Assembly: GCA_964270895.1 (NCBI GenBank) | Contig: OZ185439.1 | DNA: 64,000 nt | Source of the DNA: Podarcis filfolensis | Taxonomy: Eukaryota | Strand: one strand, 5' to 3' | Part shown: one piece after another, positions 11,442 to 16,814 of the stretch | Layout: every line of letters begins with the position of its first letter | How positions within the stretch are numbered: position 1 is the first letter of the stretch | The notes under the pieces: generated by a model | Told to the model about the DNA's origin: nothing | Database searches by the model: none | The model's input: only the letters and a program-made list of their open reading frames with translations | Translations under genes and position numbers: made by a program

Positions 11442-11798
11442 TTAGTATTACTACTAATAATAATAACAAATGTGAAAACATAAAAGCAATTCACCATTAA
11501 AACACACAGTGGCATTAAAACATCCCTAATTAAGGCAATGAAACAAAGAATCAAAAAGCATAACAATTAAAACCGCTTTCAAAGGTTAAAAGAACAAAAC
11601 CAAAAGTCCAGTTTAGGGGAATGGTTGCCTAAACAGGTGTGTCTTCAGGACCCGGCAGCATGCCAATACTGATGGGGCTTCTCATATTTTGGCAGGGAGA
11701 GCCTTTCACAACACTGGCGCCACAGTGAGAAAGCCTGCCTCTGAGTTACCATAAGCCGATAATCATCAGGCTGTGGCTGATGTTCATACTGTACTGCC

Positions 11799-12270
11799 TG
11801 TTGATATCAAGCCTTGTCATTCAGAGGCATTTGGCACTCTCCAGGTGCCCGGCTTGATTCCTTGTTGGCCTCCCCCGTCAGCGACTCCCGGCAAGACAAG
11901 GCGAGGTCTTTATCGGCCGATCCTTCTTCAAACGTGAGAAGAACACAGCCACTCCTCCTCCCTCACTCCCTGCCATCCCCAGGGAGGGGAAAGAGACAGA
12001 CAGAAATGTATTTACATGCCTTTATTTCTGTCTTTCCTCAGTGCAGAGAACAACATGTCTGCACTCTCTGATACCCAGCTGCAGAGTGAGAAATAACTCC
12101 ACCCATGTACTTCCAGTACAGGGTCATGTGACACTCTGAGCTAACATCCGGTGCTCAGTGCACATAATAGACTGTTCCTTGTTCCCACGGTACAGTCCCA
12201 AAACATCAACATCCTGTTTGGCTTTCCAGCCATCTGGAGCACTCAGCAGCATTGCTCCTTTTTCGTAACA
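11799..12270 (-). repeat. 3' LTR of Copia-type element (472 bp)
   Basis: Direct repeat of 14831-15302, preceded on minus by the PPT; AATAAA on minus at 12021-12026. Confidence 0.95.
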
Positions 12271-14130
12271 ACCTCCCCCAAAAGAATCAATGCGTGTTGC
12301 GGCAAGCAAAGCGTGATCCAGAGAAGAAAACAAACAGTTGTTATACACATAACACTCCCCTGTTGTTTCAGTTCCACCCTTGGAACTACCCGCCACTGGT
12401 TTCCCCAGTGTACCTCTCTGGTTGTCTGGCTTCCAAGGAATGAGTGCATCTGCATTACCTTGGCTAGCAACTCTCTGTTGTGTCTTTGTCTCTGACTTAG
12501 ACACAGCTCCAACCTGTCCTCGGTTGTGTACAACAGCAACACATGCAACAGCTAAGTTAGCATACTCTTCTGAGTACCTTTTGGGTGGTTCACCCTTTGT
12601 GACTCTCACAGACCTGCGTATGAGGTGCTGATCCTCTCTGCTCACTGGTTCTGTCTCAGGACTCCTAGGAGAACCAGTTCCAACAGTAAACAGTGGTTCA
12701 ACCTTCACCTGTGAAGGTCTATCCATTGTGTGAGATTTCCTCTCAATGACTGTGACAACAGAGCTCTCTGAGCTATCACTGTCGCTCTCAGTACCACTGT
12801 ACTCTGTGAAATCATCATCATCATCTGAATCGTCCTCTGTGGGAAATGTGTGTGCTATCACTCTCTCCTTTTCAGGAGCATTCTCTAGAAATTTTGTGAG
12901 AATCACCTGACCAGATTCAGACAAAATTACTCTGTAGAGACCCTTTTCATATCCCACAAAAATGCCTCTGGCATTCTTTACTCCACCTGGAGCTTCTGTC
13001 CTCACATGAGACCCAAAAACCTTGAAATGGGCAACAGAAGGTTTTCTCTGGAACAGTTTCTCAAAAGGAGAACTTCCCAACTCTTTCGAAACCTTTCTTA
13101 CCCACGCATAACTAAACGACATGAGTGACTCCGCCCAGAACTCATGTGGCAGATGTGAACTAAGCAATTGCGCATTCATTCCCTTTTGCAATTCTTTGTT
13201 CACTTTTACACAAACACCCCTGTTCCACGCTTCCGCTGAAACAGCAATCTTGTGTCTGATCCCCTTCTTCTGCAGGAACCTCTGGAAATCCTGTAAAAGA
13301 AAAATCTGCTTCTCATCTGTCAAAAGACAATCAATGTTAGCATCATGCATGTCTTTAACCTTGTCACAAAACTCTTGAAACCTTTCCAAGGCTTCCTGTG
13401 GTTTCTTTAACACATAAACCCAGACAAAGTTAGAGAAATGATCCACACACACAAGATAAAATCTTGCATTGCCTCTAGATGGTTCTAGAGGACCAATCAC
13501 ATCAGCATACACCCGCTGAAACGCTCTGTCGACCCTGGCCACCTTCTTGGCGCTCGTTTTGGTCACACCTGCAAGAGAAATCATGTTAGACTCAGAATTA
13601 CATTCCATGTAATCACTTTGGTCAAAAGTCAACAAATACAGTCCATCTTTCTGTCTGGCAGAAAGATATAACTCTCCATCTTTGAAGATCTCGCAGCTCT
13701 TATCATCATAGGACAGTCTCAGTCCTTTCTTTGCAATCTGCGAAACACTCAGCAGATTGAACTTCAGTTCAGGAACCAAGTAAACATTGTGTATTGTCAA
13801 GTTCAGACTCTTAAGATAGACAGTGCCAACCCTGGTCGCTTCCAGCTTCTGACCGTTGGCTTGTTCCACAGCGAAGCTTTGCTTCTTAAACGTCGAAAAG
13901 AGTCCTCTGTGCGGGGACATATGAAAATTACAGCCCGTATCGATTACAAAAGAGTGTCCAACATCTGGCGTGGTTCCTTTCGCCATCAGGGCCTTTGCAG
14001 GTTTCACCGAAGACTTGGTATGACCTTTGCCTGCTGCCTCAGGCTTTGCTGAGCGGCCCTTCGCTCCTTTCGGCTGGCGTGGCTTCTTGCAGTTCCGCTG
14101 AAGATGCCCAGTCTGTCCGCAATTGTAGCA
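12124..14130 (-). CDS. Copia-type polyprotein ORF: CCHC knuckle, aspartic protease, degenerate integrase + SH3-like domain, acidic tail; no RT/RNase H (first ATG at 13986)
   Basis: CYNCGQTGHLQRNC (14089-14130, in frame upstream of the tracked ORF); FVIDTGCNFHM; NVYLVPELKFNLLSV; VYADVIGP; LLTDEK; FKVFGSH...GIFVGYE..YRV; IRRSVRVTKGEPPKRY. No YxDD motif. Confidence 0.88.
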   Translation of the reverse strand, partial: CYNCGQTGHLQRNCKKPRQPKGAKGRSAKPEAAGKGHTKSSVKPAKALMAKGTTPDVGHSFVIDTGCNFHMSPHRGLFSTFKKQSFAVEQANGQKLEATRVGTVYLKSLNLTIHNVYLVPELKFNLLSVSQIAKKGLRLSYDDKSCEIFKDGELYLSARQKDGLYLLTFDQSDYMECNSESNMISLAGVTKTSAKKVARVDRAFQRVYADVIGPLEPSRGNARFYLVCVDHFSNFVWVYVLKKPQEALERFQEFCDKVKDMHDANIDCLLTDEKQIFLLQDFQRFLQKKGIRHKIAVSAEAWNRGVCVKVNKELQKGMNAQLLSSHLPHEFWAESLMSFSYAWVRKVSKELGSSPFEKLFQRKPSVAHFKVFGSHVRTEAPGGVKNARGIFVGYEKGLYRVILSESGQVILTKFLENAPEKERVIAHTFPTEDDSDDDDDFTEYSGTESDSDSSESSVVTVIERKSHTMDRPSQVKVEPLFTVGTGSPRSPETEPVSREDQHLIRRSVRVTKGEPPKRYSEEYANLAVACVAVVHNRGQVGAVSKSETKTQQRVASQGNADALIPWKPDNQRGTLGKPVAGSSKGGTETTGECYVYNNCLFSSLDHALLAATRIDSFGGGCYEKGAMLLSAPDGWKAKQDVDVLGLYRGNKEQSIMCTEHRMLAQSVT
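12271..12279 (-). promoter_or_regulatory. Polypurine tract
   Basis: GGGGGAGGT directly abutting the TG of the 3' LTR. Confidence 0.85.
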
Positions 14131-14818
14131 TCAGACAACGTTCAAAGCTACAGCATCCTCTCCAGTAGCAACATCAGTGGGGGAATTAGAACTCCGTTCT
14201 TTCCCTCCCCCTGTCCTTCACTTCCAGTGCAGCATGCCGGCTGTGTTCATCCTGAACCACGGCACTCAGGGGCACTCCCCCCTTCTTGGCATCCATGCTG
14301 AATCCAAGCCTCAGCTCTCCACTCTCGAGCTAGTTAAAATCCAAAAGCTCCTTTTGAGCTGTCTTTCTGCCTGTCTCTCAGGCAGGCAATCTCCAAGCTG
14401 TCTCAAAGTCAAAACAACTTTCGCTTTCCCGGCTCTGACTGAGCCAGCCCCAGGTGTCAGTAGTTTTCCACTGGCCTGACTGTCGTTGCTTAGCAACTGT
14501 GCATACCTCTCATCCTTATCTCGCCGCAAGAATTTCTGGTATGCAAGCCTTTACTCTCAGAGCTGTTTTTTTTTTTCAAACGCAGCTCTCGTGAACCAGA
14601 GAATAAATCAATCTGCATTCACACTTTTAGCCCGATATTCAGCATACCTTTTTGGGGCTCCGTTGCTTGGAAAACACCCCCTCTTGGGGCCAGCCGTCTG
14701 TTCAGCTTCTGGCTGCAATTGCAGACGTTATCTTCTTTCCTTGGTGCAGAGGATGGCACACGATTCATCAACCTCTCACCTCTCATGCTGATTCCCATGG
14801 ATCAGATAACCAGCAGCG

Positions 14819-14828
14819 TCTGCTACCA
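14819..14828 (-). promoter_or_regulatory. Primer-binding site complementary to initiator tRNA-Met 3' end
   Basis: TGGTAGCAGA 2 nt after the 5' LTR; complements ...UCUGCUACCA of vertebrate tRNA-iMet (recalled sequence), the usual Copia primer. Confidence 0.85.
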
Positions 14829-14830
14829 TA

Positions 14831-15302
14831 TGTTGATATCAAGCCTTGTCATTCAGAGGCATTTGGCACTCTCCAGGTGCCCGGCTTGATTCCTTGTTGG
14901 CCTCCCCCGTCAGCGACTCCCGGCAAGACAAGGCGAGGTCTTTATCGGCCGATCCTTCTTCAAACGTGAGAAGAACACAGCCACTCCTCCTCCCTCACTC
15001 CCTGCCATCCCCAGGGAGGGGAAAGAGACAGACAGAAATGTATTTACATGCCTTTATTTCTGTCTTTCCTCAGTGCAGAGAACAACATGTCTGCACTCTC
15101 TGATACCCAGCTGCAGAGTGAGAAATAACTCCACCCATGTACTTCCAGTACAGGGTCATGTGACACTCTGAGCTAACATCCGGTGCTCAGTGCACATAAT
15201 AGACTGTTCCTTGTTCCCACGGTACAGTCCCAAAACATCAACATCCTGTTTGGCTTTCCAGCCATCTGGAGCACTCAGCAGCATTGCTCCTTTTTCGTAA
15301 CA
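14831..15302 (-). repeat. 5' LTR of Copia-type element (472 bp)
   Basis: TGTTAC...TCAACA on minus; no difference from 11799-12270 found by eye; ORF-track peptides at 11814 and 14846 are identical. Confidence 0.95.
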
Positions 15303-16814
15303 CTGCCCTTAGTGACCAGTGAAATTGGTTGAATATGGGGCTTATCTGCACTTACCTTCCATCCGCTCTTTCTAGGCACGGTCCCCAATTTAAACCTCCT
15401 TCCATTTTTGCTCTGGAGCTTTCTTCAAGAAAACCCACTCTTTTGAGCTCCTTCAAAGCAAACAGCAATCCATGGAACCCCAAATTGGTGTTGGCTCCGA
15501 CTGAGCACTAAAGTGCAGGGTTTTGTGAGGAAATCTCTAAGGCAAGGTGCGGGGCGGGATGCTCCGACATTGAGTTTTCTTTTTTTTACTATTTTTACCA
15601 TCACAGGGTATAAGGTGAAATATACAGTAGATTTCCAGGCCTTGGCAACTGCTTACAGGCTTCATCAATGCTTCCACAGGCACTTAGGAGGAGAAGCATT
15701 ATGAAGACCATCTGACGTCTCAGTTTTTCCTCCTAAACACTCACGTATCTGGATCTATCTTGTAGACACTATGCCTTCTGGACATTCCCAAAGACGATTT
15801 GTGTCCTGTTCTCCAGGCGTTCCCAATTAAATTTCCACAGATCAGGCCGGCTCCATATTCTTTTGGAAAATTAAGAGTTTTCACTTAGAGCACAAGGTAG
15901 TCCTAATCAAACCTGAGGCTGCCTTGGGCTTGCCTCCCAAGCATAATGCCCCCTTTTTAATGAGCTCTGGATTTCGTCTGAGCAATGTTTTGAATATCAT
16001 CACCAGCCATTTCTGTGAAGCGTTCTATCAAACATGGCTTCCCAACTCTTCGCAGGTCCCTGCACAGAGGGTGGGTGCTGACCGCCTCATAAAGAACTCC
16101 TACGCTTTCCTTAACAATGGAAAGCTGGAAAAAGTTAAAGTTAAAATATGCCGTTCTTGTTAAGGACCATTCTAGCGCTGGGAATGAATTAAATTGCGGA
16201 AACGGCCTCAAATCCTGGCGGGTGAACTGTCCCATTCTGTAGATGAAAGTTCAAGGCTTCATTGTCCTTCATGGGGATGCGGCTGAGATCCATGAGGGGA
16301 AATGGCACATGAGGGAACATGCCGAGCCATTGAGGCACCATTAGATACCTTTCTCTATTCTCGCCCACAGCGCTATCATTTCACTTAAAAAAAAAAAGTA
16401 TGAAAAACCCCAATGCAGAATTTCATATTAGCCACCTAAGCTAAAATGGCCTACAGACATTTTACTTCATGGAGGGATCAGAACATTAGCTTTTCCATCA
16501 TCAAAGAGAAGGGACACATTTTCAATTATACTAAAACATACAAAGTGATATTTCAAGGAAGGATGAGGAAAACAGGGCTCGATGTCATCCTCACTCAAAC
16601 AAAGACATGGTGACAAGCCTGCTTGCTGTTTTCTTATGCTTTTCATACTTTTCGTTTCTAAAGTTGTAAACTTCCTCGGACACCTTCAAACAGGCTTCGC
16701 CAACAGAGTGCCCTCTGCCCCAGCCAGCATGGCCCAAGGGTCAGGGATGGCTGGAGACATGGTTCGGAATATACGAAGGGCACCATATTAGCGAAGGTAG
16801 CTTTAACAAGGGGC

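Follow-up and report, generated by a model that had tools for sequence, protein, structure and literature searches.

A Copia family of lacertid lizards without reverse transcriptase retains an integrase-shaped domain lacking its full catalytic triad

Long terminal repeat (LTR) retrotransposons that depend on others for their mobility are usually seen as non-coding hitch-hikers, or at most as Gag donors. Among the closest described systems, RLG_Quinta, whose helper is RLG_Cereba, and RLG_Sabrina are non-autonomous plant LTR retrotransposons that encode Gag (PMC11302176), and plant partner pairs of this kind are recognised by a common primer site and common LTR termini (PMC11302176). The integrase of Ty1, in turn, is built of zinc, core and C-terminal domains, with a C-terminal module after them that is long and disordered (PMC8487063). 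The present analysis concerns a Ty1/Copia-type element in a 64,000-nucleotide stretch of the genome of the lizard Podarcis filfolensis (contig OZ185439.1 of assembly GCA_964270895.1; the whole stretch, at its full length, is called the window here). The data point to a vertebrate family that lacks reverse transcriptase (RT) and is still inserting, and in which purifying selection maintains a protease as well as an integrase-shaped domain, the latter after the loss of its zinc module and the stepwise loss of its catalytic residues. The explanation we favour, and consider probable though well short of certain, is that the family is an RT-less Copia parasite, mobilised by a helper, in which a dead integrase is kept for a non-catalytic role.

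A disarmed integrase common to the family

The copy in the window carries a 627-codon open reading frame (ORF), which reads across the polypurine tract of the element and then through 147 nt of the 3' LTR. Its parts are as follows.

12124..14007, minus strand: the 627-codon ORF, comprising protease, linker, integrase-like core, SH3-like domain, acidic/Ser-rich linker, integrase-RT (IN-RT) junction motif, RNase H remnant and LTR-encoded end
13723..13950, minus strand: Copia-type aspartic protease (Pfam Pol_BBD, residues 20-95, E 6e-18), with IDTGC and its Asp at 13939-13941
13528..13617, minus strand: linker in place of the HHCC zinc module, with the HH half deleted and the CC half degenerate, as seen in alignments
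13054..13527, minus strand: integrase-like catalytic-core fold without the full D,D,E triad (first Asp, D1, at 13501-13503; second, D2, at 13315-13317; Val at 13207-13209)
12892..13053, minus strand: SH3-like integrase C-terminal domain (Pfam SH3_retrovirus, residues 319-371, E 3.9e-5; modelled as a beta barrel)
12556..12618, minus strand: conserved IN-RT junction motif (RRSxR...PPKRYSEEYAN), common to autonomous relatives (hhalign probability 97.6% against P0200, an autonomous polyprotein described below)
12298..12375, minus strand: RNase H remnant (GTETTGECYVYNNCLFSSL...) without catalytic Asp or Glu, kept in Zootoca

A chance ORF is ruled out, since it lies within an element of 3.5 kb whose LTRs are perfect, and since relatives match it down to E 1e-234. 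A sequence-only reading of the window had described it as an intact protease fused to a disarmed integrase, and this description proved right: the protease DTG, D1 (in VYADVIGP), D2 (in LLTDEKQ) and the Val codon all lie where that reading had placed them, on the minus strand. In an alignment with eight canonical Copia integrases, the Val of GVCVKVN falls on the catalytic Glu of GVAER, as had been proposed. The further claim that the HHCC module is missing, with about 42 residues left between GLY and VYAD, holds for one half of the module but not for the other. The HH half (WHxRxGH together with about 55 residues) is absent, and relative to eight canonical Copia polyproteins about 60 residues containing WHxRxGH...CxxC are lacking; 41 residues stand between GLY and VYAD, as against about 100 in canonical integrases and the closest autonomous relatives, but the CC half survives in degenerate form with a single Cys (YMECNSE versus HMKCVSCAE in the closest autonomous relatives). 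Of the features that mark an active integrase, the HHCC module and D,D(35)E are therefore lacking, and the RNase H-like core and the SH3-like domain are present. Pfam rve scores 22.3 bits on core residues 161-254, under its cut-off of 32.6, and the window ORF has no gag_pre-integrs match in Pfam. Two neighbouring residues were also recorded. A Glu five positions past the Val (VKVNKEL, VKVNTEL; window 13198-13218) is conserved in the RT-less family, where canonical integrases and autonomous relatives have Thr, and the Cys before the lost Glu is common to two relatives introduced below, P0044 and P0200 (GLCER), but not to the autonomous element of P. muralis (GLAER).

The losses extend beyond the integrase. 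No RVT or RNase H Pfam domain is found at E up to 10 in the window ORF and three tails, and of the RT and RNase H that an autonomous element encodes, only a 19-residue RNase H strand is left. This strand is identical at 12 of 19 residues to the RNase H of the autonomous element of P. muralis, and the local score of GTETTGECYVYNNCLFSSL against GTSTSGVCYMYNHCLFDWL is 72, compared with 26 +/- 4 in 1000 shuffles. The internal deletion thus extended from just past the IN-RT junction into RNase H, and it preserved the reading frame. Two other readings of the tail were rejected: as a generic RT remnant, it had no Pfam match in any of the three tails at E up to 10 and gave only the junction motif, at a probability of 0.8%, in hhalign comparisons with five distant Copia RT-RNase H regions, and a candidate remnant of the RT start (NADALIPWKP) was equalled in 363 of 1000 shuffles, so that only the RNase H strand is significant.

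A word search of proteins returned matches in Podarcis lilfordi, P. muralis and Zootoca vivipara, and six copies from at least three lacertid genomes were compared: the window copy, four P. lilfordi copies (L002, P0001, P0002 and P0005) and the Zootoca copy (L001/P0003). The integrase lesions are family-wide and not private. The sequence-only reading had allowed for siblings that retain Glu and HHCC, which would have spoken against it; in its favour, all six copies carry the Val and lack the HH module, with CVKVN in the siblings that cover the region. D1 and D2 are kept in five of five Podarcis-type copies; the Zootoca copy has Gly at D1, Asn at D2 and Val at the Glu position. Its protein, 869 aa long with a full Gag and zinc knuckle, is encoded by an RT-less LTR element (L001) whose LTRs are 98% identical and whose 869-codon ORF stops in the 3' LTR. 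The P. lilfordi element L002 is likewise an RT-less LTR element (LTRs 99.6% identical), with a 593-codon ORF and a separate gag ORF, and no RT was found in its upstream part.

Some peculiarities of these sibling sequences deserve mention. At L001:8833-8900, a second stretch resembling a primer site, with a leader, comes after the Zootoca 3' LTR, and the target duplication is missing, all of which suggests an array of tandem or recombinant origin; at L002:7180-7600 the P. lilfordi 3' LTR is truncated by another partial copy of the same family. In public databases, P0001, P0003, P0004 and P0201 are annotated as 'vomeronasal type-2 receptor 26-like', 'FAM168A isoform X1' or an uncharacterised LOC, which are chimeras of transposon and gene model; TNT 1-94 polyprotein is another public annotation among the matched lizard proteins.

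To what extent the disarmed protein is still constrained can be read from dN/dS, the ratio of nonsynonymous (dN) to synonymous (dS) divergence, calculated by the Nei-Gojobori method with bootstrap intervals between the window copy and the P. lilfordi copy. Over the ORF as a whole, dS is 0.36 and dN 0.12, giving a dN/dS of 0.33 (0.25-0.43). The integrase-like core stands at 0.24 (0.14-0.41; dS 0.52, dN 0.12), the protease at 0.24 and the SH3-like domain at 0.12, and the linker that replaces HHCC reaches 1.17; the acidic linker gives 0.37 and the tail 0.63, the latter with a low dS of 0.17. Against Zootoca, dN/dS is about 0.2 at saturated dS. Two nested autonomous elements of P. muralis, used as a yardstick, yield 0.14 (0.07-0.26) for the integrase core, 0.35 for the protease and 0.07 for RT. 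Both RT-less copies compared have near-identical LTRs, and almost all of their divergence therefore arose in replicating lineages. The dead core is thus subject to constraint on its protein sequence that is only slightly weaker than in a working integrase. Judged by these substitution ratios, the dead core and the protease are under purifying selection, and the linker in place of the zinc module drifts neutrally.

The structural model is in line with this division. An AlphaFold model of residues 1-380, built on a 10-row alignment (mean pLDDT, the model's local confidence score, 78.8), shows a beta-barrel protease, a five-strand, multi-helix core at pLDDT 85-95 and a small barrel at residues 334-376, and leaves linker residues 135-158 disordered at pLDDT below 50. 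Foldseek matches it in the PDB to the integrases of foamy virus (PFV) and Rous sarcoma virus (RSV) at E of about 1e-13, and the core on its own gives matches of TM 0.75-0.82 at 2.5-3 Å. The prediction is therefore that the integrase fold has been preserved in the dead core.

A young and damaged copy of an abundant family

The element itself spans 3504 bp of the minus strand, window 11799-15302. Its LTRs begin and end with TGTTA...AACA, and it is flanked by a 5-bp target duplication, GGCAG in the sense of the element.

11794..11798, no strand: target-site duplication beside the 3' LTR, CTGCC on the plus strand, with the same five bases at 15303-15307
11799..12270, minus strand: 3' LTR, 472 bp, TG...CA ends, 100% identical to 14831-15302
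12271..12280, minus strand: polypurine tract GGGGGAGG, adjoining the 3' LTR and lying within the ORF, with a core common to Podarcis, Zootoca and autonomous relatives
14819..14828, minus strand: primer binding site TGGTAGCAGA, two bases past the 5' LTR
14831..15302, minus strand: 5' LTR, 472 bp
15303..15307, no strand: target-site duplication beside the 5' LTR, repeating the bases of 11794-11798

Two TG...CA LTRs and a 5-bp target duplication are as expected of a Ty1/Copia (Pseudoviridae-type) element; the domain order (Pol_BBD, rve-like core, SH3_retrovirus, RNase H remnant) is of Copia type, and the sequence nests inside the Copia integrases on a tree. The primer site, of which sibling elements have the longer version TGGTAGCAGAGGATGGTTTCGAT, is presumably a match to the 3' end of initiator tRNA-Met. 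Right after it, the leader (14742-14828, minus strand) contains a sense-strand stretch ending ...CCATCCTCTGCACCA, which resembles the primer tRNA in its 3' half and might base-pair with the primer site; a similar stretch, GGTCGATGGATCG, occurs in the LTRs of the autonomous elements of P. muralis.

The window stretch is a young, insertionally polymorphic copy of an abundant, multi-copy RT-less Copia family. In X1, the sequencing run that best covers the stretch, 6113 contig pieces fall on the element, and the summed contig depth is about 30-fold that over the flanks, which indicates a multi-copy family; no second copy lies within the window. One X1 contig joins 11792 to 15302 and skips 3509 bases, the length of the element plus one duplication. 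This empty site means that the insertion is polymorphic or heterozygous in that organism. A domesticated host gene would occupy a single fixed locus without LTRs; here, there are LTRs, a target duplication, an empty-site allele and thousands of contig pieces, and the family copies of other species sit at unrelated loci.

Young as it is, this copy has suffered damage at the front of its coding region, where three further features lie.

14089..14130, minus strand: CCHC zinc knuckle (CYNCGQTGHLQRNC), separated from the ORF although it shares its frame; siblings P0001, P0003 and P0004 have it too
14131..14133, minus strand: TGA stop directly ahead of the zinc knuckle, in no other copy aligned there
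14186..14296, minus strand: short N-terminal ORF (MDAKKGG...) in a different frame, split from the knuckle frame by a one-base length difference near 14200

At 14133, all 22 other X1 contigs and all contigs of three other runs have a base that gives a sense codon, and both lengths at the site near 14200 occur among family copies in X1. Relative to the P. lilfordi copy, about 570 bp of gag core are absent. The first ATG of the ORF (13984-13986) stands 15 codons ahead of the protease Asp and is preceded by 15 ATGs in the leader. The sequence-only reading had taken the product from this ATG to be a protease plus dead integrase; this applies to the window copy but is no trait of the family, since it is the private stop at 14131-14133 that cuts off the zinc knuckle, and sibling ORFs include the knuckle and, in some copies, a full Gag. 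The window ORF is probably poorly translated, given its private stop and frame break, the loss of the gag core and the 15 ATGs that precede it.

Three small runs, guessed to be RNA and from related organisms, contain contigs that are 85-95% alike to the element over its whole internal region and nothing on the flanks. In two runs guessed to be RNA (X15 and X17, from a related organism), contigs skip 156 nt in frame at 13924-14081, which removes the stretch between the zinc knuckle and just past DTG; either the family has a variant in which the protease lacks its active site, or the contigs were misjoined in assembly.

Origin, candidate helper and competing explanations

An exhaustive profile search placed a single other close cluster, P0044, ahead of generic Copia polyproteins; a word search with the Zootoca protein returned no lizard polyprotein. 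P0044 is an 845-aa ORF from Logan runs ERR14657248 and ERR14657514 (L003, L004); its contigs, 3.1-3.8 kb long, join up as a cycle of 3736 nt. A search with it led to P0200 (L006), an autonomous polyprotein of 1338 aa that is 67% identical to P0044, and to a P. muralis gene model. The corresponding P. muralis locus (OZ076972.1, L007:5932-15991) holds two nested autonomous Copia elements, of which the inner one (L007:6377-11482) has 387-bp LTRs that are 100% identical, a CTGCT duplication and an intact 1366-codon ORF with zinc module, D,D,E, RT and RNase H. The stop codon of this ORF is made by bases 4-6 of the 3' LTR. The window LTR differs at that site (12265-12270 versus L007:11095-11101), and its ORF continues for 49 codons into U3; P. 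lilfordi P0001 likewise reads into its own LTR.

In an IQ-TREE phylogeny of integrase cores, the lacertid RT-less copies, the P. muralis elements, P0200 and P0044 form one clade (100/100). By the evidence of these sequences, the family descends from a Copia lineage with intact autonomous members. The lacertid RT-less copies group together (100/99) on a long stem, and P0044 sits beside P0200 (99/82). The loss of RT in P0044 was therefore a separate event, and RT-less polyprotein-coding derivatives consequently arose at least twice in the lineage. P0044 is RT-less and of similar size, and its one ORF runs from gag through zinc knuckle and protease to the integrase and ends soon past the IN-RT junction, as in the window family; it differs in that the residues of the zinc module and the complete D,D,E are retained, and its rve match lies above the Pfam cut-off. 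Since P0200 and the P. muralis elements show on the tree that its RT loss was independent, P0044 is no evidence that RT loss preceded the integrase lesions.

With these autonomous relatives, P0200 and the P. muralis elements, the window family has in common LTRs that start TGTTA and end CAACA, a GGGGGAG polypurine core, the order gag, protease, integrase, the junction PPKR(Y/F)..E(F/Y)A and the RNase H strand CYMYNxC(L/V)F; it differs from them in lacking RT, most of RNase H and the HH module and in having Val for the catalytic Glu. At the level of the signals, the P0200 element reads AAATCAACA at the LTR end, TA and then TGGTAGCAGAGG, with the polypurine tract GGGGGAGTA before TGTTAG, and the window element reads ATATCAACA, TA and TGGTAGCAGAC, with GGGGGAGGT before TGTTAC. 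The primer site thus matches that of P0200 (TA spacer; TGGTAGCAGAG versus TGGTAGCAGAC) but not that of P. muralis, and neither element is known from the P. filfolensis genome. The termini TGTTA(G/C)...(C/T)CAACA and the polypurine core are common, and no similarity was detected between the LTR bodies. The P. muralis primer region, ACAAGGTTTCGGGCCCAG, differs from that of the RT-less family and is, we assume, complementary to an internal part of initiator tRNA. By the criteria used for plant partners (PMC11302176), a P0200-like element, not known from this genome, would qualify as a helper.

The model that we favour involves three changes from an autonomous ancestor: an in-frame loss of RT and most of RNase H, the deletion of the zinc module's HH half, and the replacement of the catalytic Glu by Val. 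The resulting family polyprotein would run from Gag (in some copies) through zinc knuckle and protease to the dead core with its SH3-like domain and the RNase H remnant. An autonomous Copia that matches the family in its LTR ends, polypurine tract and primer site would supply RT and active integrase in trans. In a non-catalytic way, the dead domain would aid the spread of the parasite itself, and its candidate tasks are to bring the RNA or polyprotein of the element into particles or to serve as a non-catalytic subunit beside the integrase of the helper. A bolder version holds that the pseudo-integrase is kept for a new non-catalytic task essential to parasitising the helper, be it as structural subunit or by coupling RNA to the particle, and that RT-less polyprotein-coding parasites arise repeatedly; this we put forward tentatively, as a possibility that we would not call probable.

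Several points weigh against the model. The window copy inserted recently despite its damaged gag and ORF start, and its own ORF was therefore not required in cis, so that the protein is at least dispensable there. No helper was identified in this genome, of which the 64-kb window was examined, and the P. muralis element matches in LTR termini and polypurine tract but not in primer site or LTR body. The dN/dS values come from three nucleotide sequences and the Nei-Gojobori method, with dS towards Zootoca saturated. The contigs of the runs guessed to be RNA suggest that the family is transcribed, in an indirect manner, and the specific non-catalytic role of the dead domain is something that we infer.

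Against this background, other explanations have to be weighed. Plain decay would make the family a deletion derivative on its way to becoming non-coding, its lesions neutral and its ORF open only through youth. The fresh damage in the window copy (private stop, frame break, lost gag core) would fit, as would the neutral linker in place of the zinc module and the fact that many non-autonomous LTR elements are non-coding. We nonetheless consider decay quite unlikely, because the same lesions recur in six copies of at least three genomes, at a dS of 0.36 and at saturated dS, and because the dN/dS values of the dead core (0.24) and the SH3-like domain (0.12) have confidence limits below 1; moreover, ORFs of 593-869 codons have stayed open in three diverged copies, and the fold is predicted with high confidence. 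If the ORF were instead kept for the sake of the RNA, be it to avoid nonsense-mediated decay or to preserve packaging or dimerisation signals, the low dS of the tail (0.17, at dN/dS 0.63) would be accounted for, as would the fact that each of the three copies has an ORF extending across its polypurine tract and into the LTR. However, avoidance of stops does not lower dN relative to dS, the core combines a high dS (0.52) with a dN of 0.12, and the constraint tracks domain borders, all of which makes this account very improbable.

Two further alternatives accept a constrained protein and assign it a different task. Core and SH3-like domain mediate oligomerisation and DNA binding in retroviral integrases, and a dead integrase, with or without the protease, could act as a dominant negative against autonomous Copia elements, either as a selfish competitor or as a host brake on copy number in the manner of Ty1 p22 or Fv1. 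The sequence-only reading had likewise suggested a dominant negative, and as other possible roles LTR binding without cutting and action of the protease in trans. The loss of the catalytic residue and the zinc module, with core and SH3-like domain kept under selection, would fit such interference, but a family that depends on a helper and yet occurs in large numbers, has near-identical LTRs in each of three species and is polymorphic at the present insertion is hard to reconcile with it, as is a dispersed mobile family with no fixed host locus; we therefore regard interference as unlikely. Alternatively, the integrase of the Podarcis-type copies might still be catalytic by means of its two Asp residues and another acidic residue, for instance the Glu at +5. 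The retention of D1 and D2 in all five of these copies and the presence of Glu at +5 in place of the canonical Thr speak for residual catalysis. Yet these copies have no HH zinc module, elements of the Zootoca branch move and keep their ORF without either Asp, and, by helix geometry only, position +5 lies off the helix face of the lost Glu, such that we give this explanation hardly any credence. The helper-mobilised parasite with a dead but useful integrase domain accordingly remains our preferred explanation.

Comparison with known systems

If the pattern holds genome-wide, the family would be a natural instance of separation of function for what integrase does besides catalysis (assembly, RNA or DNA binding, oligomerisation), roles that have otherwise been studied in Ty1 and retroviruses only with engineered mutants. 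It would also offer a tractable pair of helper and parasite in lizards, whose Copia elements have hardly been described (full-text literature searches found no papers on lizard Copia elements).

Among described elements, LARD and TRIM resemble the window family in having LTRs, a primer site and a polypurine tract but no RT, and in being mobilised in trans. By definition, however, they lack conserved coding sequence, and the window family departs from them in its ORF of 590-870 codons with a dN/dS of about 0.2-0.33. The Ty1 integrase has a core, an SH3-like domain and a long disordered stretch in the same order as the window protein, in which this stretch is acidic and Ser-rich; the window integrase differs in its missing zinc-binding N-terminal domain and its incomplete catalytic triad. 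RLG_Quinta and RLG_Sabrina, finally, likewise keep open an ORF for part of the polyprotein and rely on a related autonomous family, but they are Gypsy elements of grasses that encode Gag together with a domain whose function is unknown, without integrase (PMC11302176). The window family, by contrast, is a vertebrate Copia family that carries a protease and an inactivated integrase which are under selection, and its copy in the window has no Gag.

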